A program made the translations under genes and the position numbers. From Saccostrea echinata (Eukaryota): a stretch of 64,000 nt of DNA. Location: contig NW_026889750.1 in assembly GCF_033153115.1 (NCBI RefSeq), forward strand, positions 39,308,001 to 39,372,000, given 5' to 3'. Each line of letters starts with the position of its first letter. The first letter of the stretch is position 1. The notes beneath the pieces were generated by a model. The model did no database searches. It was given only the letters and a program-made list of their open reading frames with translations, and was not told the origin of the DNA. Of the stretch, positions 2,301 through 20,056 are shown one piece after another.

Positions 2301-5300
2301 GACAAAAGCACATCGGAAAATTAGTGAGCATATTTTTCCATCTTATTAAGCGTAAATTTCAACGGTTTTATATATTTGAAGAGCTCATATGATTTTAATT
2401 TTTATTTAGATTTTTTTACCGCCCTAAACACACACACAAGTCAAGGAATAATTGAGTTACAAGGAAAAATGTAACGTGATTTTTGATATAAATCACAATG
2501 TATAATCTAATAAGAACATAGCTGCAATAATGTAGCCCTCTACGATTTTTTTTAATCTGATATTTTCAGGAGAGGGCTACAATTCCACTGCATCTCCGTA
2601 ATGGTGCAAATATATTTTTAGATACGGGCGACTGCAAAATAAATTGTTTTTGCATTTAACTTACTTCCAATAAGACGGAATTTTTATTTACTATCAACAA
2701 CATAGCCCTTCATACGCGAAAACCAAGTAAAATAAATCTGCGTGTTTACCAGAGGCCTGTTCAACAGGGCGAACGTTCGCGAGCGCTCGCGAACATATCT
2801 GTTGGAAAGATAAGGAATATTGGCGAGCGCTCGCGAACGTTTGCTCTGTTGAACAGGCCTCAGTTGTTCTGCTCAGCAGCCATGACAGTTCTCGCGTGAT
2901 GTACTGAGACATGCGACAGGACCTATATACTAACGGGATAGGCAACTCTCGCAATATCTCGTAAGTTGCGTGATTTCATAAGTCAATTTTAGTTAAATAT
3001 ATCTCTTTTGCTATTAAATATTTCAGAATAAAATCTTAATTTATCTATCAAAAAATTATTCAAGATTTGTTATTAGCACAGTTTTTACTCCTTATCTTAG
3101 TAGTAATTACGTTTATTTAAAAATCAGTGTGTGTCCCTAATCGGCCGTATTTCCGAGAAATTGTCGATCTCGGTGGTTGTTTACTTAATATCTAGATTAT
3201 TTTATAATATGTGCTTTAAAATTTATTAAATATCCATTCCGATACACAAAAAGAACAGATTACATTAATCAGAAAACAAGCTTTTTACTTGGGAAAAACG
3301 TAGTTAGAAAAACTTGCAGTGTTGTTTGTGCCGTTTTGGGTAAATAAACATGGCGCTGAAGGATTTGCCTATCCCGTTAGTATATATAGGTCCCTGCTTG
3401 CGATTGAAATTTAGAATCACTTTATTAGGTAAATGTTGGTGTATATAAATCTTTGTGTTGTTTGGTATAACTTAACATCGATAAATAAAAGCATCCCACA
3501 TGATATTTTTTCATAAACATTGATATTTATGCTTAAAATAAGGGAAATCCTAATAGGTCCGCTCCCCTAGATCCCGAATTCTCATTGGTTGTCCCAAAAT
3601 AAAATCGATCAAGGTCAGTAAACAAGGCGGATAAATTCAAAATGTGATGTTGACATACACGAAAAATAACCAATATACGGATTGTTCTGTAAATTTTTGG
3701 ATCAATTCATGTTTTGCATAACTACATTTTATGAGTTCAGGTAAGATATGTTAATAAAGTACCCACTAACTGATAATTTGAGCCGAAATCTGTGAGGTAG
3801 AATCACTCCCGCACTTGCACCATTACGGAGATCCTAAGGAGTTGTAGCCCTCTCCCCCCCCCCCCCCCCCAAAAAAAAAATCGGAGAGGGCTACATTATT
3901 GCAGCTAATAAGAACAGTGTCCTGATGATAGAAGAACAGCTTTGTCACAATCCAAAAATTGGAAAATGTTAATAAGTCAAATTCTAGTGAATGTGGTTAT
4001 GGTGGGAAATAAAAGCTGTGGATCACTTTATTTATTTTTCAGAAATTTATACTGTTTTATGCTTAGTAACAGAAAATAATGAACAGGTTCCACTTTTTAT
4101 TTGCATTTTCTATTCAAAGCACCATGTGGCCAATGCTGTTGGACATGAGCAAAGAAGAATGCAAGCGAATATTGAGGAGAATGGAGTTGGAGGCGTACAG
4201 CTCTATTGTTTCAGCTTTCAGAGCACAGGGCGATCTCACAAAAGATAAGAAAAAAATTCTTCAGGATCTTCAGTCCACTTTAAGGTAAATTATGATACTA
4301 TTTCACAGAATTGCAGAAAACAAAAACATCTTTTAAATAAGACAGTGTCTTACTCTTTTTACTTCTCTTTATTGTAGTATCTCAACAGAGAGACACAGAG
4401 CTGAAGTCAGAAGGGCTGTTAATGATGAAAAATTAGCCACCATTGCTGATCAGTACGTTATTGAAATTTTTTCTGCCCCATGGGCTACTTTTGGGCCAAA
4501 ATAGAGGGCAAAGTTTTACACAAGAAATATGAAACTTCTTTATGAGCAAGAAGACTAGAATTTGTAAGCTTGACATTAAGCTTCAGTGTACTTAACAAAT
4601 TGCTGAAATTGTGGTCTTTAAGAAAATAATAGCTTCTAAAAGGGTTTTCATTTATCCACGTTTATTTGCAAGAAAGGTAATTAAACTCAGTTGCGTGTTG
4701 CAGCACTTTTGCTTATTGTAATTTTGGCCTTAATGTAGTGGTTTCTTAAAAAAAGAAACCTTTATGAATTTTGTTTGAATTAAGACTGTGTTTATAATTT
4801 TAAAGCATGTGTGGACCTAGCACAGATGCAGAATGGATGATCGAGGGGAGGAGACTAATTCCTCTGATGCCTCGTCTTGTGCCTCAAACGGCATTCACGG
4901 TGACAGCCAACCAGATGGCTAATCTACAAGCAGAAAAAAATGCAGCTATGCCAAGTCCATCTAGAACAGGCAGTAAAGACTGTAAGAAATAAATGATGTA
5001 CTAAATCAGAATATTTTCAACTTGTCTAACTTGAAGCTAGCATAATGAATTCTTTCAAAATTGCAGTAAGCAGCACCTCCTCTAGTCCACCGACTCCTGT
5101 TAGTGGTACTGTCACCAAGGTAACAAGACCATCCAGCCCAAACTCTAATGTGGTGGTATTGCCAAGTGGAATGTCTATTCACATCAAAGGTATTTTAAAT
5201 TTTCTTTAGACTGATTAAAACTTCATTTTTCATCAGTAAAAATTTCAAATTTAAGATAGTGACATTCACAAAATCTTGTAGGTGGATTAAACACAGAAGA

Positions 5301-8300
5301 TGAGGAAGAATTGCCTGCAAGAAAGAGAAGAAGAAGTCAGTCCTCTTCAGAATCTATTAATATTGTGTCTCCATCAGCTGGTACACAAACTCCAAGGGTC
5401 ACGTATTCCACTACAGCAAGTTCAGCTTCAGGGATGTCCCCTGTCAAAATCACCATCAGCAAGAGTCCCCAAACACGCCCTCAAGTCACATCTTCAACCA
5501 GCCAGTCACAAAAGGTTTGCTCTGTTCAATAGCCAGGGGAAAATTTTGTTGCAAAATTAATATATTTGATGCAAAAAGAAGAATTTTTATGACCATACAG
5601 TGGCCTGCAAAGAATGTCAGCAATCTCACAGATATTAAGTTTTATATGCACATCTATTTAATGATGAAATATAGTTTCAAGTTTTTTGGGTGATAGAAAT
5701 GTTTCTTATTGTCCCCCGCTTTCGCAAAACAAGGGGACATTAAATCTCATTTGTCTGTCACAAAAACTACCACCGTGGTCATAACTTTTGAATGAGAAAA
5801 GAGAGAGCTCTCATATTTCACAAATTTGTACATTACCTCTGACGAGATCTTTGCAAATGTGCGATGGTTTTTGACACCTTGACCTTGAAGTTTGACCTGC
5901 TTTTCAAAAATTTTGACATTGATGATAACATTTGAATGAGAGAAGATAGGGCATTTATCTCTTACATATGCATTACTTGTGACAATCCCTTTCCAAATAT
6001 GTATAATTTTTGAACCCATGACCTTGCCCTGGAAGTTCTGACCTGCTGTAAATCCCTTTTTTTTTTGTGAAAACTTTATTTTTGTGTAATTAAGAAAATC
6101 AGTCTGCTCCCGAAAATTTCATTCTGGCTTATATTTTTATTAGTATAGATTATATACAACAACCAGAGTTCACCAAGATTCTGTCTTGCTTATAAATTGC
6201 AAAAATAAGGTGTCACAAAAATTTTGTGATGTACAGTACTTTTCAAAGATTTTTAAGATTGGTGATGAAAATTTATAATGAGAGAAGATAGGGTGTTCAT
6301 ATTTGGCATGTGCATTACCTGTGACAAGACCTTTCCAAATGTACATATGTACTATGTTTTTTGACCCCATGACCTTAATCTAGAAGTTTGACTTACATAT
6401 CAAAAATGTTTAACTTTGGCTGTAACTTCTGCTCCAGAAGAGACAGGGCTTTCATATTTTTTTCACATACATGTGCATTACTCGTGACGACCTTTTGGAT
6501 AGTATTTTGATATTTGATCTCATGACCTTGATCTTGAAGTTTGATGCCGGTTCAAGAAACTTTGCTGTAACTTTCAAAATTCAAAAATTTAAATCTTTTT
6601 TGTATGATGGACAGCCAGGACACATAGGCAAGACAGTTACAATTTACCATAAATGATTCCATCCCATCCACTAAGACACTGAAAGCAGGAGTCCACAATA
6701 TACTGAATTTGCTTATTAAGTTCTATATGATAAAGGTGTGTGACATAATAACCAGTGACAGTGCTACCTACATGTATCCCTCTACAGGTTATCCTTGTAT
6801 CCAGTTCTGGGCAAGCATCATCATCCAGCATTTTACATCAGAAATCAATCACAGTCCCTGTGGTTAAAACAACCAGTTCTTTGGGAGGAACATCCAATCA
6901 GAAATCTAATATCTTACCAAATTCTGGATCTTCATCCAATGGAAATCTTGGAAACATTGTTACAGTGGCAACTCCCTTGTCATCAACTTCATCTTCAAGT
7001 AAGGAATAAAAGTAGATGACAGAGAATATGAAGTTTTTAGATTAGATCAACAGATACATTTATATCAGATGGATTGTTTATTCGTCAGTAACATTCATCC
7101 TCACTGATGAACAAGCACAGAAACATTATTGACAAGCAAAATAGGGTTAGTTACATGTACTGGTCATCAATTTGGTGCACTTGAGATACTGTAACATACT
7201 TTTTTTCAGCTATAATTCTGTCATTTACTTGATCCTCAGAATAATTATTTAAAGTTAGAATCTACTGTGAAATTCAACCACCGGATATATTTTAAGAAAT
7301 TCAAGCAAAGAGTGAATGATGATAATTATTTACATTGTTGATTATTCTGAAGACATCCTCAGGACATTTCACTTTCACAACTTGGGAGTTTGATTTATGC
7401 TGAACAATTTTCATTACCAGCAATTTTAAATGCATTTTTGATTGATGGGTTTACTAAAACATGCAAGACACTACCATATTTATGTTCATTGTTCTTAATT
7501 AATGCTCTTTTATTTTAAAATATTTATTTACTATATTTATTTTAAACAGTGTATTAAGAGCATGAACATCTAAATGTTTCAATGGTTAGCATTGTGCTTA
7601 GTGTTATGGACCTTCTGCTAATCATGCCTGCAGGCAATTAAACTGCAGATGTTGAAAATACCTATCTACCATGAACTTTGAAAATAATATGTATGGAGCA
7701 AAAATTTTTACCATAATGTCAAATTCAATCAAAAATTGAAAATGTTTTGTTTTACCAAAATAAAATGCACGTAATGAAAAGAAGAAACAAAAGATAAACA
7801 CCAAGGCTTCTTAACATTGTTAAAAATCATTCACATACAAAAAATTTTTTTTAAAAGAATTCACAAGTCTGTGTGCTGCATATTGCATTATTTTATTGCT
7901 CTTCTGTATTTTACAAAATCACTTTCAGACTCTACATCCACAGCTGTCACGACATCAACTATGACCTTCTTGACCCCAACTGTCAGTATTCAGAAACCTC
8001 GCCCAAAAACAGTTCCAAGACAGAGATTTCCTGTGGTAAGAATTTGTAAATCTTTTCTTAAATGAAACAAGCACTTCTTGTGATGATCATTGAAGGAAAA
8101 TGGTGTGGATCAACTACCATAAAATCATTAATTGAAATTATATTTTCATTGACCGTATTTTTCATGTATAGTACATGTATGTATAGATAAACAGGAACTT
8201 GACCCCAGATTTCACCTTTTACAGAGCCAGGGTCAGCAGAAGCCTGGAGTAGTCATACCAATGGGGCCGCAGCCTGTACAGCCCTCTCCCCAGTCTATGC

Positions 8301-11300
8301 AGAACATTCAGATAAAACCTGTTGGCAAGTCCCCCTCCACAATTCAGATTAGGCAGGAGGGAGGTAAGAAAAGCAAATATTAAACTTTTCTTTACTTTTC
8401 AAAAGAAATATTCTGTATGATTTGGAAAAGGAAATTTTCTGGGAAATCATGAATTACATGTAATAGCAAATTATATATCTAGAAAACAAAGAATTGATTC
8501 ATTGGTGAGAGTGGGTTAACCATAAGAATGTGAAGTATCTAGTTAGACAAACTTTAATATGTTACAGGTATGAAGATAATTACTCAGAGTTTCCCAGGGT
8601 CTGGTGGAAGTAAGATTCTACCTAAGCCCACTCAGCTCCCTACCAGTTCTGGTACACCAGTTGTCGTCGTTAGTCCCGGATCATCCACTTCATCAAATGT
8701 CACCATGGTCACCAAACCCATCACATCCATCGGTATTGTAATCAGAATTAAATTTATCATGCCTCATATATATGTAGTAGTGTTCCTGTTGGAATGAGCC
8801 AAGTGTCATGATAATAGTGTTGAATGTTACAGTTAACTGGAGAAAAAGTTTGTATGGTGTTTTGTTTTGAAATATTTAGAAAAATTGTTTTCATTTGAAG
8901 GTCAAGCTGGGACAAAGATTTTGAACATAACGACTCAAGGTGGGAAGGTGATTTCTACAGGAACAAGTCGTGGACCAAATGTTGTAACAGTGAATCCTAA
9001 AACACTCCACTTAACAGCCGTGAAATCAGCAGCGGGAGGAAGTAAGTGTGAATGTCATACCTCTTATAGAAGAGTCTGTTTGGAATATTTTGATGTTTCT
9101 TAGGGTCCAGAGTTTATGTTTGTAAGGGCCAAAAGAGGCAGGTGCCGGGCCCTATTTGCAGTGATAGAAATGTAAGGTTCCCAAAATTACCTATTAAAGG
9201 AAATTCCCAAACGCAATGGGAATTTTTTTGCAATGGGAAAGGCCAAGACCTTTGTTATTAATAAGTAAAAAAAAAATTGAGTCCCCTGTATGTACACCAT
9301 GTATTTTAATTTAATGAGGCAAAGCAATGATTAATAGTTTTTCTTCATCCACTGAAGATGTGTTGGAGATGTTTTAAATGGTGTATTTTTTCCTTTTCTG
9401 TTTTCAAACAACCAATTTACATTATCTTAGGTGGAAAGCCCAATGTTATTGTTGTACAAAAGACCCAGCCCCGGCGACTTTCAGGAATGCCCACTTCTAC
9501 CGCAAGGGGAACAACTGTCATTTCTAGTCCATTTGAAAAGGTCTGTAGTTGTTTATTGTTATTAAGATATTACCCTGTTCTGCTCGTGTTAAAATTTTCT
9601 AAGGCCTAAGGGGTAAATGTTAAATTTAAATGGTATATAGCAGATTTACATGTATGATTGTAATAAAGAAACTTTGTTTAACTTTTCTGACTCAGGAGTT
9701 GGTGAGTTTCCTACAGAAGCAAGACAATACTAAACACATCGTAGTAACATCACCTTCAGGTGGCCAGAGACCAATAGAAAGGAAGGTTATAGTGACCACT
9801 CCAGGGCAGCTGGAGGCCACTAGACAGGTACGTGTACATCTATCATGTACTGTAAAAAAAAACTGTTATCACTTTAAGATATATGGACAGGCATTACTTA
9901 AAAGTGACAGAATATATTTACAATAAATTTGAATTAAACAAATTATAAAAAAACATTAAAGCAAATACTGTCTTCCCTTTTGTTAGAGAGTTCGTATTGA
10001 AAATGCAGAAGGGAAGTTGATCCAAGATCTGATCCATGCAGCAAGTCAGGATTCTGAGGGAGGTGGTGACGTCACTATTAACCTGGACGAAGCTACCCTG
10101 GCTGCTCTGACGGGAAGCACTAGCAGTCAGGTATCAGAGACGGTCACCAGTAAAGGTATGTGACAGTAACACTGCACATTTTTATCTCCTCTTGTAATTT
10201 AAAGTTTATGTGATGTATATTAAGTATTTCATGTCTTAGGTGCCTCAAGTGAAAACCTGCCAAACAATGAATGGTTTGAGTATGATGACAATAACCCCTC
10301 CTTCCAGTCTGGGGTAGACCAGGCTGCTGTACAAGCCCTCATAGAACAACAGGGATCTAACAAACCAAAAGTGACAGTTCAAAGGTTAGTATAAAGTCAG
10401 ATAAGCTCTCAAAGAATAACAGGGATCTATCAAATCAAAGTTGATCATTCAAAGGTTAGTTTAAACTCAGATAAGCCCTTAAAGAATAACAGGGATCTAC
10501 TAAACTAAATGTAACAATTCAAAGGTTAGTATAGACACAGATTGTACTGCTGTACAAGCCATCATAAAACAACAGAGATCTAGCGACTCGGGAGGTTACT
10601 GTAGACTCGGATTATTTGTATAAGTTTGATAAGAGTAAGAGAAATGGATATTAAGGTAGTTGAAAGGGACCTTGGAAGTGGAGAATGAAGGGAGAAGATG
10701 AAGGAGGCAGAAGGGGGACAGTGAGTGATACCCTGAACCCCTCACTGCCTGATCTGTCCCCATGAGTATGTTTATTCATTTACAGGTCTGCCAGTGTGGA
10801 TATTGGGCAGTTATCAGATCAACTCTCACAGCAGCAGTTCTACACAATTGGTATGATATATGTATTTGTTTTTGATTCTAACTAATGAATGATAACTAAG
10901 TACTTAAATATTGAGGTGTGAAAAGTATTTTATCTGGTATGATTTTTCTATTCATTTGAGAAACATTTTAATATTTATATATGCAGAGATTTGGGGGCAT
11001 ATAGTTTTTGGCTTGTCTGTCAAACATGTTTTTGGCCTCATGACCTTGATTTTTGAGTTTGACCTACTTTTGTCAAACTTTAACCTTTACCATAATGTGT
11101 GAATGGTTGGTATTAGGGCTTTCATATTTCACATGAGTATTTCTTTTGCCAAGAGCTATCTCTGGGTACCAACTTTTTTGACCTCATGATCTTGAACTTG
11201 GAGTTTAATCTACTTTTGAAAAACCTTAATTTTGGCCATGAGCTGCCATATGGTGGCAACAATGTTTCACACCCACATCTTTTTTCATGGGAATATTGTA

Positions 11301-14300
11301 GAACAAGCCATGAAGATTCTGAATAATCCAGAACAGAGTGAGGCAATGATGTTGGAAGAGGTAATTGAAGATGCTAAACCAAAAAGCTAGTACAGCACTA
11401 ATCTTACTGTAAATCATTTTTGCATGAGCAGGAACTTTATATAATTATGCCACACAGTATAAAAATCTGCCAGATATACATTTATTAGCTTGTTTAATTT
11501 GCTATTGAGAAGGAAATGGTGTAAAATGTCTTGTGCAGTTAAAAGTTCCATGACCAGCTTCAGTGACACAGCACTGTCAGTGTACAAGAAGTAAAATGTT
11601 TCAATGAAAAGTTAATCGATCTGATTTTATTTTGTTATTGTCTGTATATGAATTTCATTCTCAAATATACAATGTACTTCAATATTTTTAGAGCCAGGAA
11701 TCCACATCAGAAGGGAATGTTGTCATAGAGACAGTAAATACATCACAGAGTTCTGACATTACATCACAGAATGAGTTGGAACAGATAGCTCGTAACCTGA
11801 ACCTCCAAGGGGAGCTGGATCCACAAACAGGGATATTTTACACAGTGACAAATGCAGCTGGTCAGACTGAAACCCGCAGGCTAACAACAGAATCCAAGGT
11901 TGTCACAGAGAGTGCTCCCCAAGGGGAGGCAACCCCAGGCTCCAAAGCATATGATTTGTTAAGCAGTTCCCTGGCTCAGGCACAGATTGACCTGGATCCT
12001 TATCAGTTCATTGAGGAGGATGTACTTTCTGACAAATCTGCAACAGGAAGTCAGGCTGATAGTGGGGTTGTGGGTAAGATAAAACACAACATTCAATTAA
12101 TTTCTTCAGTTAAATTTTAACATGACTGCATATTTTTGTATTATGATGTATAGTAAGAAGATGACCAAGATCAGTGCTGTTGAAAAATACAGATTAAAAT
12201 AATCGATTGAAATTAAATGAATTTTAAGATTTTTAAAAATCAGATTTTTTTCCTGTTTGTGTATTTTCATGAATACATACATCAATCAAATTGCACATTT
12301 GTATTAATGAAACATGTTAATGGGACATTTTCATGTTCTTTGAGTGGATTATTTACAGTATAAGAATTTAATCCTTGCCTGAATTTCCACAGAGATCCCA
12401 TCTTCTGGAGAGGTCTCGGCTGACACAACAATAGAGAATGTGGTGGTGTCTGATAGCAGTGAGCCCACCACTAGTGCCGCCCTCCACACCACCACACTGA
12501 ACACCACCACAATCAGGATCAAACCCGGCAGCAGCTTCATCCCTATACAGGATGTGGCTAAATCTTCTACCATCAATGTTACACAGGAACAGGTAGGACT
12601 TGGGTTTTACTTCATTCATGGTAGTGGATAAAAACTTTAAAAAAAAAAAGCATTGAAATTAATAATTAATTGATTTCAAGTAATTGCATGAGATATTCAG
12701 TTGTCACTGAATATTACAGACTATTATTTGAGATATTTTTGGGTCTGTTGGTTAGACCAGAACAGCTTATGCATTGCTTATGTGTCCATTCCTAGTTTGT
12801 TAAAACAGTTTACATAATTATAGGAATAAGTTTGACCTGATACAAATTTAGAGTACTTCTGGACATGTACATGTTTCAGCCAAACTTGAATTTCAATGTA
12901 CAGTCTTGATAATGTTATTGAAAATAGAATGTAAAAATAGGCTTCTTTGATAATTTCAGTCTGACTAAGTCTGGTATAAATATAGATTACCTCAAAATAT
13001 TTATTAAGGTTATTGAGTTTGCTGTAAATTATACTTTCTGTCAATAAGAAAAGGTTAAAGCTTTAAAGTTATAAATTCATTTTTCTTTTTGTTTGTTTAA
13101 TAGTTTTTATTTTGTTTTTCATTAAAAAAAAAAATGTTGCTTCTTTCTTTGCAGTTTAAAAAGGGGTGTGTTCTCAATTCAGAAAGAAAATTTTAAAAAT
13201 GCTAATGTTTGATCTGATCAATTTTTTTGTAAAATATTATAGGCTGAAATCATAAAAGCTGCCATCAAATCAGAATGGTTAAATCATGAAGTTAAAAATA
13301 AATACATGTATTTTTTTTTTTTTGAATGAATGAATAACATTGTGTTTTGGTGTTATATATGTTATAAGAACATTTTTGATACAGAAAATTATTTCATTTT
13401 AGGTGATTTTCTATTCTGCAACATTATGATAATTATAAACTATTTAGGAACATTAGATTTTTTAAAATATATAAATTATTCTAACTACATAATGATTTAC
13501 CAATAGATAAACAGGTTATCCAGTTATAATTACTGTTATAATTACCCAATTGCACTGTCAACTGAACTAATTGCATGTGATGGTGAGAAGGTAGAGAACT
13601 TGGTACCTGTAATTAGCACCTGCTAGGTAATCAGATGCAGTATCTGCACTTACCAATGGTATTAGTGTGTAATTTGGAGGGTGTCAAGAGTAGGAGGGAG
13701 AACTCATGTAATTGGATTGTGTGCTCAGGCCAGGTATATATAGCTATCCCTCTGGCTAGGCTCATCAATCAGTTCTTCTGGCTTCTAGCACTTCAGACCT
13801 TGTGGAAATATTTTACTGAGAGCAAGAGAAGTTTTGTGAAACTGAAATCATAGGAAAAATTTTTTCCTATCTTTATCAATAATTTCAGGATTGTTTCCCT
13901 TTTTGGGAAAATTATCTGTGATATTTTTTTTTGATTTGTCAATTGAGCAAAGATGAATGGGGCTATAGTGTATGAGAGGGATTATGCGGACCATCATAAT
14001 GTGGACAGGGATAATGGTTATCCCCCTTCAACAGAGCCATCTGTCATGGCCCAGGGCGAGTACCCCCCTCCTTACTTCCCTCCACCCTACACCATGCCAT
14101 CTCAGCCTCCCATGGATTATCATTTCAATAACTCGTATGCTCCTGTGTCCGACTACCAGCAGCAGGAGCAGCCCTCCCAACAGGAGTTCCAGGCTATGCA
14201 TGGTGGCATAGACAGAGTCCACGAGTACAAGATTCAGGATGGTGGTGCCAACATCCACAGACCAGAACCGGTGATGCCAGGAACTATCCCTGTCAACTTC

Positions 14301-17300
14301 AATGAACAAGGTATGATGAGTGGTGGAGTCCAGCAGGGAATGCCACCCATGAATGGAAACTACCCAATGGAGAATTACATCCCTAGAGAAATGAGAGAGA
14401 TGATGGGAAACTTTGAAGCACAGTCACAGAAAAGCCTGGTAGTCCATGAGAAGGCTGGTCGCAATGATGTGGATATATCTGCAGCTGCTGCTCCAGCTGA
14501 TGTTTTCTGTATGGTGGATGGAAGACTCTCCCTACTTAGCAGTACCACCAAGTACAAAGTCACAATAGCAGAAATACAGAGAAGATTGTCTCCCCCTGAG
14601 TGCCTTAATGCTTCACTGCTAGGAGGAGTTCTCAGAAGAGCCAAGTCTAAAAATGGAGGAAGATGTCTGAGAGAGAAGCTGGACAAGATTGGATTGAGTC
14701 TTCCTGCAGGTAGAAGGAAAGCAGCCCAGACAACACTCCTGACATCTCTTGTGGAAGGGGAAGCTGTACGACTTGCAAGGGATTATGGGTATTTGTGCGA
14801 GTCCGAGTTCCCAGCAAGGAAGTGTGCCGAATACAACTGTAAGAAATACCAGACAACAGACCCCCAGGAAAACATGGCAAGGAAGAATATGGTGCTGGCC
14901 ACTAAGCAGATCCTGAAGGAGTTTATGGATATCCTGAATCAGGACCGATCTCCCATTGGAAACTCTCGTCCCCAACCAATCCTGGAGCCTGAGATACAGA
15001 GCTATCTGACCAATTTCAGTCTGATTAGCCATGGTTTTGGATCTCCTGCCATTGTTGCTTCACTTGCTGCAGTTCAAACATACCTGACAGAAGTCCTCAA
15101 GGTCATGGACAAAGGATTTCTCAACGATGGATCGATGCCACCCTCCAAGAAAAGAAAGTTGTAAGAAGGAAAGACGTTCTTTGCTCTGTAAATAAAGTGC
15201 TTTGTGTGACAGTGTCTTGAATGTTGACTTGTTTCCTAGGAAGATATATTGATAACTTTGTGACTTAAGTGCAGATTCCTGTTGCTCACTAAGTTGATGT
15301 TTGTGTTTCCAGTGTTTTTAATCTGTGTTTATAAGGATCTGTAATTCCAGACTCATTGTGATCTTCAATAACTTACAATAGAGATATTTAATATGTACCT
15401 TTTTTCATCAATATTACTTTGTATGTTGTAATTCATTGAATAAATGATTGTAGTATATTTACAGTTGTTTTTGTAGTATTTTGCTATTACACACATTTAG
15501 TTTCGTGTACTTAAAATGGATTTAAAATAAAATGTTAATCCTTTAGATGTTTTAACATTCTGGGTTAAACATACCAAGATGCCTTTATAGAATACCTTTG
15601 CTTATGTTTGCAAGAACTTGCTGACTTTTGTAACCTGGGTCATTACTTGTTACTGGCTTTACCTGGGTCATTACTTGTTACGTGACCTACTGGCTTTTGT
15701 AACCTGGGTCATTACTTGTTACATGACCTACTGACTTTTGTAACCTGGGTCATTACTTGTTACATAATGTACTGGCTTTTGTAACCTGGGTCATTACTTG
15801 TTACATAACCTACTGGCTTTTGTAATCTGGGTCATTACTTGTTACAGTTGAGTTTAGAAGGTGTAGTTCAGGATGACTTTAACACAGAGACTGTAGAAAT
15901 GACGGGCACAACAGACTTCCTGTCCCAGCCAGCGGCCCTGACAGAAGAAGTCCAGTTAGTGATGGATTCTGTCTCGCTCGGAGATCGCACCATTCAGAGC
16001 ACTGAAACTGTCACGGTGGAAACCACACAAACAGTAGATCCGACAGAAGTCAGTCTAGATGAGTTTGTGGTCATGGATAACCCCATCCCAGGTAATATAT
16101 GAGCCATGGTACACATTAAGAAAAAAAATCCTGTTTATCCCAGTCTTGTAGATTTAAATAAGAAAAAGTCTACCTGATATAATACATTTTCTGTTAGCCT
16201 CTAAATACTTAAACCAATTCATATGCATTTATTCCCTCCCAGATTTACATATCGATTGTAGTTTTAAGCATACTTCTATTTTATGCAGGTACTAGTGTAA
16301 GTGAAAGCCACAGTGTTGATCCCTTAAGCAGTTCTGATCCCACGGGCTTGGCAAGATTAGGAAAGAGAAAAAGGAAAGTTCCAGCTGCATTGGAGGATAG
16401 TCCCACCCCCCTGCCTGGTGGGGGCTGGAACAGAGCATGCCTGGGGTAGGGTATTTTTTATGCAGCCTGTTATCAGGAGAATGTTGATTAATTTAATGAT
16501 TTTGAGGAAGTATAGCATGTTAATGAGGTTTTTGGAAGATCAAGATAATGAAACTATTTCAAACATTTAAAATCATTGTGAAGATTGTGATTTTGACTCT
16601 TAGGATAATACAGAAAGTGATGAAATACAGAGGATTAAACAGACATAAAGATGACCTGAATGCCTCCACATGGTTTTTAGAACCAGGTAAGTGCAAGAAT
16701 ATCTTTAACTGTCATAGAACAATTTTAGCTTTAAATATGTGTCATGTGGTTTTATATATATGCATACATAAAAATGATAGTACAGTAAAACTTGTTGAAT
16801 CCGGATGTTGTGCATTCCGGCATGTTGTTCAGTCCGACATAATATTTTAGTCCCTTGAATTTTCTTTATAATTTATGTTTAATAAATGTTGTGCAATCCA
16901 GATCTTGCCTATTCTGTAAACCGGCCGCTAATTAAAGAACTTACTGCTCATAATTAGTACAAATTATCTCCTCTAATCCGGCCACTTATTTTTACCTGTG
17001 CCCGCTGGTCATTAGAGAAGTCTCGCGTGGGGTAATTATTGTCCCGTTAATGATCTATCCTGTATCGACAGTTTAGATTCTAACAAACGTGATAAAAAAA
17101 ATCATTAATGGCTCAAGTAAGGCGAGGAAAGTTGCGTGTAGCATGTCTGTAGAAAAAACTTGGAGACTTATTCATGACCTCCTTTCTACTTTCGTTTTGC
17201 GTGCACGACGTGCAATTCGAATTACTTCCCTTTTTGTCGCTAGTTTACAACGACCAAAGTGACAGAAGATTTTTTTCAATATTCATTACATGTAGAACAT

Positions 17301-18486
17301 TTGAAATTAACAAATACAGTATCTAAATATTCAAACATATTAATTTTAAAAGAAAGAAATTAATTAGGAATCTGTCCCTAACAAAATAATATTTACAGCT
17401 ACGATAAGGTTTTTGATTGTATTTAAGCACTTAACGATTTTCAAATTTGATAAATGAACTAGAGATATTATATTTCGATACTGAATAAAAAACGTAGCAG
17501 AAATTAAAATTCTTAAGAACAAACAGAGTTCAAAACAAATGGAAATAGACGATTTTTTCAAGTGAAACGTAAAAAATGACACATTTGATCAAGTATTTAT
17601 TTACCACTCTTTGTTTATATCTATGTAATTTTTAACTTGCTATAACGGTTCAATTTTCTCTAATCCGGCCAAAAATTTTGGAACCACTGGTCGCCGGATT
17701 AGACAAGTTTTACTGTAAATGGCAATATTTCAACCAAAGAAAAAAAGGAAACTTTTTACAGGCATTTTTATCATGAATATATTAACATCTTCCAATGGCT
17801 TTATTTCTGTAGTGGACCCAGAGGATGCCCCAGATTATTACACAATCATAAAAAATCCTATGGACTTTGGAACAATCAAAAAGAAATTGGAGGTTGGTTA
17901 CATTTCCAGTTCATCTGTTATTAATTGAAGCAGGATTCTATTGAATTTACAAACTGAAAAAGACAAAAATGTAGAGCTTTTCTTAAAAGCTACTATTGTG
18001 TAGGATGATGCAAGGAAATTTTTTTCATACAGATTATATTTCCAAATTGTATATTTCCTGTTACAGAGTCATACTTACTCTGATTATGAAGATTTCCACT
18101 CAGACATGCTGCTAGTTCGAGACAACTGTCGCGTGTACAACCCCCCAGGCAGTGTGGTCCGTAGAGATTGTGATGAGGTGTTTGCTTACTACATGTCAGA
18201 GTACGAAAGAATCCTAGAAAAATGGCAGAAGGTAAAAAAAAAAAACTAAGTCATAATTTGTTCGAATTTTTCACTTTTTCATTTTTGTAAGTTTGTTGCC
18301 TTAACATGTATCAGTCTGAGTGGTTTAAAATCATAATAAAAACATTAATATATCCAGTGTCTTTGTTAATTTACTAAAAATTCATTGTTCTGTTCTTTAT
18401 TTTTTCATTATCTTAACTTTTAGGCTCACATCTCTTCACCCTCCTCCAAGAAACTGAAGTTTGAAAGTAGAAGTCCTAAGATGTGA
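2295..18486 (+). CDS. EMSY: EMSY-like chromatin regulator (N-terminal ENT domain, long S/T/V-rich middle, C-terminal bromodomain), 25 coding exons, ~1205 aa
   Basis: Phase-consistent GT-AG exons: 2295-2323, 4120-4284, 4378-4452, 4806-4981, 5067-5189, 5282-5514, 6788-6998, 7929-8035, 8225-8363, 8568-8732, 8901-9041, 9431-9540, 9696-9827, 9987-10155, 10240-10384, 10786-10850, 11302-11360, 11692-12073, 12393-12592, 15848-16091, 16289-16445, 16604-16686, 17813-17892, 18067-18231, 18424-18486 (3618 nt, ends TGA). ENT domain: [44 protein letters not shown]...[18 protein letters not shown]...[31 protein letters not shown]-like motifs: [38 protein letters not shown]. The first exon ([10 protein letters not shown]) is less certain; ATG 4124 is an alternative start. 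Confidence 0.9.
2753..2860. mobile_element. 108-bp hairpin MITE, PIF/Harbinger-like
   Basis: AGGCCTGTTCAACAG.GC.AACGTTCGCGAGCGCTCGC arm inverted at the other end; CAG flanks both sides. Confidence 0.75.
2917..3396. mobile_element. Non-autonomous TIR element, 7-bp TSD (P-like), copy 2, inverted relative to 487-984
   Basis: Same TIRs; the internal sequence is the reverse complement of 487-984. Flanks CATGCGA/CTTGCGA (one mismatch). Confidence 0.85.
5705..6570 (+). mobile_element. Degenerate Helentron-associated (HINE-like) element with internal tandem units
   Basis: Begins TTATTGTCCCCCGCT...GGGGAC hairpin; repeated TGACCTTGA(C/A)C..GAAGTTTGACCT and GGCCATAACTT-like units, same family as 45010-46180. 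Confidence 0.55.
10324..10582 (+). repeat. 70-bp tandem repeat built from EMSY exon 15 3' end and splice donor
   Basis: AGGGATCTA at 10351/10421/10491; TTCAAAG|GTTAGT donors at 10385/10455/10525; re-copy of exon sequence at 10547-10582. Confidence 0.85.
10980..11283 (+). mobile_element. Short HINE-like element ending just upstream of the EMSY exon 17 acceptor
   Basis: GGGGCATATAGTTTTTGG start, GACCTTGA..GAGTTTGACCTACTTTT units, end GTTTCACACCCACATCTTTT resembling 46159-46180. Confidence 0.55.
13735..13774 (+). promoter_or_regulatory. Candidate core promoter of nested TFAP2 gene (TATA + Inr)
   Basis: TATATATAG at 13735-13743 followed ~30-35 nt later by TCAGTT (13769-13774, invertebrate Inr consensus TCAKTY), ~180 nt upstream of the ATG. 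Confidence 0.55.
13953..15164 (+). CDS. TFAP2: Intronless AP-2 (TFAP2) family transcription factor, 403 aa, nested in EMSY intron 19
   Basis: Single ORF with PY activation motif [11 protein letters not shown] and AP-2 basic/helix-span-helix domain [76 protein letters not shown]...[18 protein letters not shown]...[13 protein letters not shown]. The paralog letter cannot be assigned. Confidence 0.93.
15191..15531 (+). terminator. Candidate polyadenylation signals of nested TFAP2 gene
   Basis: AATAAA at 15191, 15439 (followed by a GT/T-rich tract ~15464-15485) and 15526. Confidence 0.5.
15621..15847 (+). repeat. 41-bp tandem repeat (6 copies) terminating in the EMSY exon 20 acceptor
   Basis: A(C/T)CTGGGTCATTACTTGTTAC at 15633, 15661, 15702, 15743, 15784 and 15825; the last copy ends ...TTACTTGTTACAG|. 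Confidence 0.9.
16420..18231 (+). other. Bromodomain-encoding exons of the EMSY-like gene
   Basis: Spliced translation reads ACLGIIQKVMK...[73 protein letters not shown]. It has the canonical F..PV...APDYY..IK.PMD and NC..YN (acetyl-lysine-binding Asn) motifs. Confidence 0.9.
16783..17715. mobile_element. Tc1/mariner (pogo-like) MITE in EMSY intron 22
   Basis: TA|CAGTAAAACTTGT..AATCCGG ... CCGGATTAGACAAGTTTTACTG|TA. Confidence 0.8.
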
Positions 18487-20056
18487 ATTGACTTTTTTAT
18501 ATTAACTCAGACCTATGTGCCAAATTTCCTCTGCTCCTTTTGATGGAGTCGTATACTGCCAGATTTTGTTGTTTTATGTTTTCAATCTCATGTTATATTA
18601 AGAAAATTGACTGAAAAATTAAATGTCTTGTTGTTTGATTAGAATAGCTTCAATTTCAGAGTCCACATTTGAAATCATTAAGAATGAACCATGCACATTT
18701 TTAAGGATGGTCATTGAATATTGTTATAAATTTCATTTATTTTTGTGCAATACTTTGGATCTCAGATTTAACTGGATGTTGGTTGTAAATTTCCAAGTCT
18801 TCTAAATACAATGTACATATAAATACTAAAATTAATGGACATGTTATTTGGAATCTGACAGTAAACTTATGTAGGAATCCTAGATATTTTTAATGCATGT
18901 AATACTGTTTATGATTTGAAACAAAGATGTTGAAAATGTTTATTAGTATTACAGGTTGAAACACATGCTTGTATACTGTACATGTATGTTTTTTATTACT
19001 GAATATTAAAATGTAAAAATATGAGTACAGCTTTTCATTTGTATGTCATAATATAGTACAGTTCTGTTTATTTTTTACTGTATTTATCAGTTCTTGACTA
19101 TTTGAAGATTTATTCTTGGTCAACAGTACTTCTGATCTCCCTGCCCATCTCTTTTCTTTTTAGTGCAAGTGAGTACAGTAATTAAATGAAACTTTGTGTA
19201 AAGGTTGTCTAATGCCTGTGTGTCCATCTGCATCAATTAATTTGTTTTGCTTTGTCCTATTGAAATTTTCATAAGTTAATCAGGAATTGTGTTCAAATAC
19301 AATGTTCAGGGTTAACTTTGACCTTTGGAACTGATAAATGAGAAATCTACATGATTTATTGTGGAGTATCTTCACAGAGATGAATCAGAATGGGATGCAA
19401 TTTAAAGTTTTGCCAGCAGACACTGTCCTGAGAATTTCTGAAAAATGAAAGCTGCTCAGTTTTGGATGATGGTGCATTCTATATAACTTGGACCCTTGGT
19501 GACTGCACATCTATTGAAAATGACATAATTTTCTCGCTAGTCCTTTTATGACGTCATGAATATTGTATCATTCCCAAATTTTGAAAATTTCTTCAAAAAT
19601 TGACAAAAGTTTAATCTGTTTTTCAATATCTTGCATTGAGCCCAACCTCTAATCCAATATATGCAATTGTATAATGAAAGAACATTTTTTTTTATCAAGG
19701 GGTATGTTTTTATTTTAATAACTTGCTGAAGATATGCAAAAACACCTGTTTCTTGCAAAAATCACGCAATTTCAAAAAACCTCTACAACGTTGCAATATT
19801 TCACCAATAAAATTATATAGGTATGATACTTTTTTTTAAAACATGGTTTTTCTTGTGTGAATTTTTCAGAATCTTTACTATGAAAACTTTTCAAGTGTTT
19901 TAAAGTAGATTCAAATTTTAATAAACAATCCGGAAGACAAGCTCCTTGATGAAAAAATCTTGACTGCGCAGAATTTATGCACATGGGCTTCATCTTTCTT
20001 TGTTTAAAACATTCTGTATAAAATACTAAATAATGCATATAGTTGAAGGTTTCATT

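Follow-up and report, generated by a model that had tools for sequence, protein, structure and literature searches.

Does an animal EMSY protein carry a chromatin reader of its own, and if so, since when? EMSY has been studied almost solely in mammals, where it is known as an ENT domain attached to a featureless scaffold, and its targeting to chromatin is poorly understood. The question is raised by a stretch of 64,000 nucleotides (nt) from the oyster Saccostrea echinata (assembly GCF_033153115.1, contig NW_026889750.1, positions 39,308,001 to 39,372,000, forward strand), referred to here as the window, in which an earlier note made from the letters alone had proposed an EMSY-like gene running in phase from an ENT domain into a C-terminal bromodomain. 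As the best explanation of the data collected here, the oyster EMSY very probably consists of an ENT domain, a low-complexity scaffold, a basic motif and a bromodomain, a layout which would be ancestral and lost in vertebrates and insects. This degree of confidence covers the structural and evolutionary part of the explanation. Exons, splicing, domain identity, distribution, conservation and a predicted fold are documented below.

Gene structure and bromodomain of the oyster EMSY

No N occurs in the window, which is AT-rich animal DNA, and the EMSY proteins of Magallana gigas, Ostrea edulis, Saccostrea cucullata, Crassostrea virginica and Mytilus edulis align with it collinearly in tblastn searches (4121-18483). 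Twenty-four coding exon cores, each translated alone, are contiguous on residues 14-1205 of the EMSY-like protein of S. cucullata (P0154, 1205 amino acids [aa]), with identities of 89-100% per exon (0-11% difference) and exactly one P0154 residue between cores at split codons, including those ending and resuming at residues 941/943 across an intron that hosts an AP-2 gene. Because of this contiguity, the gene model equals the public annotation of the relatives. In five bivalves the annotated EMSY proteins show identical residues joined, with equal exon junctions in the oysters, and the in-phase join from the ENT domain to the bromodomain is borne out by these junctions as well as by spliced contigs. 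The count of 25 exons given in the earlier note was not reached with the 24 placed cores; a further exon possibly lies upstream of the core at 4130, since residues 1-13 of P0154 were not placed in the window. The two ENT pieces together cover positions 1-67 of the 71 positions of PF03735, and the EMSY family profile matches the human EMSY ENT structures 2fmm, 1utu and 1uz3 with E values of 2e-85 to 3e-63. In the whole genome of 923 Mb there is a single ENT match, and the bromodomain of exon E matches itself alone. In the window lies the EMSY orthologue of an ostreid oyster, present as a single copy.

The six terminal exons, A to F, were read from the sequence on the forward strand (15848-18486), all their introns being of the GT..AG type. 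Their lengths add up to 244+157+83+80+165+63 = 792 nt, or 264 codons including the stop, and with start phases of 0, 1, 2, 1, 0 and 0 they remain in phase from the upstream exon, which ends at 12592 in phase 0 with the donor CAG/GTAGGA, to the terminal TGA. In a Pfam search made exon by exon, both exon D and exon E exceed the PF00439 cut-off of 21.7 bits and jointly cover profile positions 22-83 of 84, whereas exons A, B, C and F, searched singly, match no family, so that helix Z, encoded by B and C, is unmatched alone. The complete bromodomain described in the earlier note is confirmed, with the Tyr of A-P-D-Y-Y (17827-17841) and the Asn of N-C-R-V-Y-N (18124-18141), which we take to be the acetyl-lysine anchors, and so is the basic GKRKRK sequence ahead of it.

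An alignment of 44 family members shows how strictly these features are kept. The W and F of the shelf and the ZA-loop Tyr (the first of P-D-Y-Y) occur in 44/44, the acetyl-lysine-anchoring Asn of Y-N in 43/44 and the preceding Tyr in 42/44; the R/K positions of the basic motif, where they vary at all, are conserved to at least 90%, P-M-D-F is invariant or nearly so, and Y-N-P-P-G is kept. A W-P-F shelf is a typical feature of bromodomains without defining them; here the window reads W-F-L (16671-16679, within W-F-L-E-P at 16671-16685) and all 44 members have W-F, with no Pro. Between helix Z and this shelf lies an insert of 8-9 residues. The insert noted earlier before WFLEPV is real in comparison with other bromodomains, but cannot be called unusual, as it is conserved across the EMSY-type family. 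Identity to Mytilus amounts to 85, 90 and 93% in exons D, E and F and to 79-88% in the ENT exons, against 46-82% in the middle exons; strong purifying selection on both ends of the protein would fit these values.

The fold was assessed with an AlphaFold2 (AF2) model of a relative, the 223-aa family fragment P0028, calculated with 44 sequences. The predicted local distance difference test (pLDDT) score of this model is at least 90 over about residues 91-215 (some 125 residues), which form a left-handed bundle of the four helices Z, A, B and C, ZA and BC loops included, and the insert after helix Z appears as a confident loop (pLDDT about 94). A Foldseek comparison of the P0028 model with BPTF, BAZ2A, BRD4-BD1, PCAF and CECR2 yielded template modelling (TM) scores of 0.93-0.95 and root mean square deviations of about 1 Å at 26-34% sequence identity. 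The domain is accordingly modelled as a canonical bromodomain fold belonging to an orphan subfamily: it shares fold, Asn and Tyr with the solved bromodomains of BPTF, BAZ2A, PCAF/GCN5, CECR2, BRD4 and BRD1, but differs from them by its low identity, the extra loop after helix Z, W-F instead of W-P-F, and a separate clade in the tree described below. An assignment to one of the named vertebrate subfamilies (BET, GCN5/PCAF/BPTF/CECR2, BRPF/BRD1, BAZ, TAF1 or polybromo) was considered and none is favoured; in a comparison of the family profile with single bromodomains the scores were 88.5 bits for BRD1, 87.7 for BRD2-BD2, 85.4 for GCN5 and about 85 for BRD4-BD2.

As an alternative, the domain might have lost acetyl-lysine reading and have become a protein-protein module, a reader of other acyl groups or a binder of a non-histone partner. 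The shelf without Pro, the conserved insert next to it and the low identity to any solved bromodomain speak for such a change, but the near-invariance of the anchoring Asn and the ZA-loop Tyr, the retention of P-M-D-F and Y-N-P-P-G, and the close superposition of the relative's modelled backbone on ligand-binding bromodomains make it unlikely. Acetyl-lysine reading by the oyster EMSY bromodomain, taken as a mechanism by itself, is proposed because of the conserved residues and the predicted fold, and appears somewhat more probable than its contrary.

Splicing across the AP-2 intron

The intron preceding exon A contains an intact intronless open reading frame for an AP-2 protein (13953-15161 plus stop, forward strand, 403 aa), which matches PF03299 with an E value of 9.1e-73 over profile positions 1-196 of 197. 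Because this complete gene lies on the same strand as EMSY, a separate transcription unit for the bromodomain exons was at first a real possibility, and the earlier note had itself stated that its reading would fall if these exons belonged to another unit or if EMSY mRNA always ended before 15848. Contigs of four public runs (X1, X2, X3 and X5) were aligned to positions 12550-18549. The contigs of 4/4 runs join 12592 to 15848, and the joints 16091>16289, 16445>16604, 16686>17813 and 18231>18424, likewise GT..AG, are also present in all four; the joint 17892>18067 is found in three of the four, X3 showing it displaced by 3 letters, which is tentatively read as a base difference at 18067. Since the introns are skipped, the contigs represent spliced RNA. 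A single contig of 4039 nt (X1, record 3) covers every joint from 12592>15848 to 18231>18424 and, by arithmetic, continues for about 2770 nt upstream of the joint 12592>15848 and for 409 nt past 18549, a length that would suit an mRNA which is nearly complete and stops just short of the start codon. The AP-2 reading frame, in turn, is covered by small contigs separate from those of EMSY.

It might still be argued that the bromodomain exons form a wholly or partly separate unit, the join to EMSY being a minor read-through, or that much EMSY mRNA ends early, for example at AP-2 poly(A) sites, leaving an isoform without bromodomain like vertebrate EMSY. Models of this kind exist in other animals, namely bromodomain-only proteins of Octopus sinensis (330 aa) and Priapulus (546 aa) and adjacent ENT and bromodomain models in Elysia crispata, but these short models may be annotation splits. 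A 203-nt contig of X2 lies inside the intron at 12643-12836, 50 nt past the donor at 12592; it is preceded by a T-run, carries 6 mismatches and is not joined to an exon, so that it gives no sufficient ground for assuming an alternative 3' end. On the other side, in each of the four runs the contig covering exons A-F is the one with the joint 12592>15848, none of the contigs listed begins at exon A, and the annotated orthologues in five bivalves have this join at the same residues. Such a division of the transcript is therefore quite improbable, and one EMSY mRNA that includes the bromodomain exons remains the preferred reading.

The acceptor used for exon A lies in a tandem repeat of about 47 bp that occupies about 15600-15847. 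The last unit provides the acceptor for 15848, TTGTTACAG, while in the other units TTACAT, TTACTG or TTACGT stands at the corresponding spot; the splice site thus belongs to a repeat array with near-miss copies of it farther upstream. Contigs of all four runs also match parts of the intron between exons C and D (16781-17717); their ends are loose on either side, and they differ from the window at several bases. Their appearance suggests a dispersed repeat or a transposon that is transcribed elsewhere, not intron retention. The coordinates of the EMSY gene are collected in Table 1.

Table 1. Parts of the oyster EMSY gene in the window, all coordinates being those of the 64,000-nt stretch. The 3' end of the untranslated region (UTR) is a putative one, no poly(A) site having been seen.
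Feature	Position	Strand	Basis
First EMSY coding exon core, N-terminal half of ENT	4130..4285	+	PF03735, E 2.3e-14, 53.6 bits, profile 1-42/71; 98% identity to P0154 residues 14-64
Second half of ENT	4379..4468	+	PF03735, E 3.4e-6, 27.4 bits, profile 43-67/71; 100% identity over 24 aa, P0154 residues 66-89
Sixteen middle EMSY exon cores, S/T/P/Q-rich scaffold	4807..12592	+	Collinear tblastn to oyster and mussel EMSY; per-exon map to P0154 residues 91-941
Intron of 3255 nt, hosting the nested AP-2 gene	12593..15847	+	GT..AG skip in contigs of 4/4 runs
Exon A, conserved motif that vertebrate and termite EMSY have at their C-terminal ends	15848..16091	+	96% identity to P0154 residues 943-1023; alignment of C-termini; joints 12592>15848 and 16091>16289
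Exon B, GKRKRK (16360-16377) and start of helix Z	16289..16445	+	Sequence; joints in 4/4 runs
Exon C, remaining helix Z, family-wide insert, W-F-L-E-P shelf region	16604..16686	+	Sequence; 100% identity to P0154 residues 1077-1103
Exon D, ZA loop and helix A, Tyr codon 17836-17838	17813..17892	+	PF00439, E 1.3e-7, 31.9 bits, profile 22-47/84
Exon E, helices B and C, Asn codon 18139-18141	18067..18231	+	PF00439, E 1.9e-7, 31.4 bits, profile 48-83/84
Exon F, conserved C-terminal tail and TGA (18484-18486)	18424..18486	+	100% identity to P0154 residues 1186-1205; joint 18231>18424 in 4/4 runs
3' UTR, approximate inferred end	18487..18958	+	X1 contig record 3, 409 letters past 18549; ATTAAA at 18618 and 19005

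Distribution among animals and probable loss of the module

A phmmer search with exon E against 1.84 billion representative proteins gave 219 matches at E <= 0.001. Among the 150 matches listed, 27 proteins of 818-1937 aa were chosen which have a single match at their extreme C-terminus, and their alignment shows the same order throughout, starting with ENT and continuing with KRKRK, helix Z, the insert, W-F and the remaining bromodomain. PF00439 is present in 27/27 of them and PF03735 in 19/27, the remaining eight being N-terminally short or lacking ENT in the gene model, as judged from profile scoring. In profile scoring, 26 of 27 EMSY-type bromodomains reach 153-236 bits, whereas other bromodomains do not exceed 90 bits. 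Among 120 homologues listed by a word-indexed search made with the Mytilus protein, 61 have both PF03735 and PF00439, and all of these are from non-vertebrate animals: bivalves, gastropods, a chiton, Lingula, nemerteans, annelids, hemichordates, Branchiostoma, echinoderms and Strigamia. Other searches, including look-ups by name, extended this list to ticks, a millipede, sea urchins including S. purpuratus, Actinia, Dendronephthya, Sanderia, Trichoplax and the sponges Sycon and Corticium. ENT and a C-terminal bromodomain are combined in one protein in 11 phyla, from sponges to amphioxus, and a query with the amphioxus module returned 107 matches, 61 of which reach at least 142 bits and are all from non-vertebrate animals, followed by fish BRDT/BRD4 at 104 bits or less.

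A bromodomain phylogeny, which the earlier note had suggested, was calculated as a quick maximum-likelihood tree of 31 EMSY-type bromodomains and an outgroup limited to 21 others. The EMSY-type sequences form one clade on a long branch with a Shimodaira-Hasegawa-like approximate likelihood ratio test (SH-aLRT) value of 98, and within it Ambulacraria, oysters, anthozoans and arthropods each group together. Because of the spread over 11 phyla and the single bromodomain clade, the combination of ENT and bromodomain appears to be ancestral to animals and vertically inherited. Of the two origins which had been left open before, an ancestral state lost in vertebrates is the one supported, the architecture being found from sponges and Trichoplax to amphioxus and the bromodomains forming one clade. 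The other, the capture of a bromodomain gene by EMSY in molluscs or lophotrochozoans only, has found no direct support, although the AP-2 gene and the acceptor repeat mark the intron at 12593-15847 as dynamic, and it is scarcely credible, being contradicted by the same architecture in sponges, Trichoplax, cnidarians, echinoderms, hemichordates and amphioxus, by a single clade with the expected groupings, and by the insert and KRKRK motif common to all, so that every non-mollusc model would need to be an artefact; it was rejected on distribution and tree.

The same architecture, insert and basic motif as in the window are found in the annotated EMSY of S. cucullata (P0154), M. gigas isoform X3 (P0158), Branchiostoma (P0193) and Trichoplax (B3S7M2, P0083). 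The architecture is already contained in automated RefSeq and UniProt models, under names such as 'EMSY isoform X3 [Magallana gigas]' or, for Trichoplax, 'Bromo domain-containing protein'. As judged from their lengths, P0163 (1192 aa, from a Logan contig of 4229 nt) and similar entries would represent spliced full-length mRNAs. In some species the EMSY-type bromodomain is annotated as a gene of its own, as in O. sinensis (P0033), Argonauta hians (P0189, partial) and Priapulus (P0044), and E. crispata has neighbouring ENT and bromodomain models (P0198/P0113, RRG08_028152/028153), the ENT half of which includes a transposase (PF13843). Some bromodomain-only models bear misleading names (bdf1-like, GCN5, female sterile-like), and such models may be either annotation splits or cases of real gene fission. 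Two further entries carry additional domains. The metaclust protein P0187 (1004 aa) combines ENT with the MYST acetyltransferase domains PF17772 and PF01853 and may be a chimeric assembly, or else a fusion of ENT and a histone acetyltransferase (HAT) recalling the trypanosome HAT2-ENT complex; the EMSY model P0167 of Solemya velum (1422 aa), with an extra carboxypeptidase (PF00246), is probably a merged gene model.

Vertebrate EMSY (human C11orf30) is orthologous to these proteins, with a nearly identical ENT domain, but lacks the module of KRKRK and bromodomain, the missing bromodomain having been stated in the earlier note. PF00439 is absent from the records of all 47 vertebrate EMSY proteins listed, 46 of which have PF03735 alone and one no domain on record, and a search for a relic with the EMSY-type profile at maximum sensitivity found none in these 47, the best score being -0.7 bits. 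ENT alone is also found in the insect EMSY proteins among the matches listed, which come from three species, two termites and a katydid. The EMSY proteins of amphioxus and a hemichordate show collinear similarity to that of a ray over their first ~860-930 residues, and a second short match connects residues ~1131-1186 of amphioxus EMSY with the last ~60 residues of the ray, newt, falcon and arowana proteins. It corresponds to a shared C-terminal motif, VxVE(P/T)S..(D/N)FTSQR, whose copy in the window lies in exon A. An alignment of the C-termini shows that vertebrate and termite EMSY end some 20-30 residues past this motif, while the others continue into KRKRK and the bromodomain. On these alignments, the bromodomain module appears to have been lost in vertebrates and in insects, each time by truncation after the shared motif. 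A search by shared 5-residue words found no vertebrate, tunicate or lamprey protein of 767-2440 aa with an EMSY-type bromodomain, which does not establish its absence from tunicates and cyclostomes.

Proposed function and relation to known systems

In the proposed mechanism, the mRNA would specify the ENT domain, a long low-complexity scaffold and then, in the six terminal exons, KRKRK and a four-helix bromodomain, a layout which would predate the split of sponges, placozoans, cnidarians and bilaterians. By binding acetyl-lysine on histone tails, the bromodomain would give the EMSY scaffold its own reader of acetylated promoter chromatin, and may contribute to positioning or retaining an eraser complex on promoter nucleosomes that are acetylated. 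For KRKRK, a role in nuclear import or in contacts to DNA or the nucleosome is probable. In oysters, such a complex would be of the SIN3B/HDAC/KDM5 type known from mammals. According to the cited papers, mammalian EMSY is a subunit of a SIN3B-HDAC1/2-KDM5A-MRG15-PHF12-GATAD1 complex at H3K4me3-rich promoters (PMC9309374; PMC6295471), its N-terminal region binds HP1-beta and BS69, and it also binds BRCA2, these interactions being described there for mammals only (PMC3122151; PMC9309374; PMC6295471). EMSY is also listed among the partners of BS69.

Several points weigh against this picture. Ligand binding of the EMSY-type bromodomain is a prediction, the structural model is that of the relative P0028 and not of the window protein, and the ligand preference may differ from that of textbook bromodomains, because W-F-L replaces W-P-F and the insert of 8-9 residues lies beside the pocket. 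The tree is a quick search. The four runs were guessed to be RNA, for which the skipping of introns argues; X1 and X3 are one sample and X1 to X3 one study. Their contigs give no isoform proportions and cannot rule out shorter isoforms. To the left of the joint 12592>15848 they contribute just 39 letters (X1, X2 and X3), since the aligned stretch starts at 12550, and in X5 24 letters, which is under the 31-letter rule. The presence of ENT and bromodomain on one molecule in this oyster is deduced from the length of the 4039-nt contig and from the orthologues.

The coupling of ENT proteins to bromodomains recurs in two distant systems. Arabidopsis EML1 and EML2 combine ENT with an Agenet/Tudor domain that reads H3K4me3 in cis, and bind the BET protein GTE4 in trans (bioRxiv 10.1101/2024.07.25.605061); they differ from oyster EMSY in that the cis reader is Agenet and the bromodomain resides on a separate protein, and the comparison concerns the coupling of ENT, not the sequence outside it. 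In trypanosomatids, an ENT protein is physically tied to bromodomain factors in the HAT2/BDF3/BDF5 complex (PMC9236257; PMC9279504; bioRxiv 10.64898/2026.03.22.713544); here the association is in trans, the complex is an acetyltransferase and the organism is a distant eukaryote. These pairings in trans are suggestive, and a tentative, rather doubtful extension would be that ENT scaffolds and bromodomain readers form an ancient obligatory pair, fused in the first animals via an orphan subfamily with a ZA-side insert, which vertebrates would have given up altogether, and acting in trans in plants, kinetoplastids and vertebrates. BS69/ZMYND11, a partner of EMSY in mammals, carries a bromodomain. 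If the idea were true, a partner with a bromodomain, BS69/ZMYND11 for example, would make up for the loss in vertebrates, and invertebrate EMSY would reveal the step of acetyl-lysine reading that is missing for the human EMSY-KDM5A-SIN3B complex.

Gene and domains are what is usual in a non-vertebrate animal, and RefSeq and UniProt already contain them for numerous species. Among open-access papers and preprints, none was found that deals with a bromodomain carried by an animal EMSY itself or with the loss of this domain in vertebrates, and the evolutionary reading, modest as it is, may have gone unremarked so far. What the oyster locus adds is good documentation of an intron that hosts another gene and is spliced out. 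The presence of an intact, strongly conserved EMSY bromodomain in most animal phyla gives a testable hint that the EMSY complex is meant for acetylated chromatin; by that hint, some partner must supply the reader in vertebrates.

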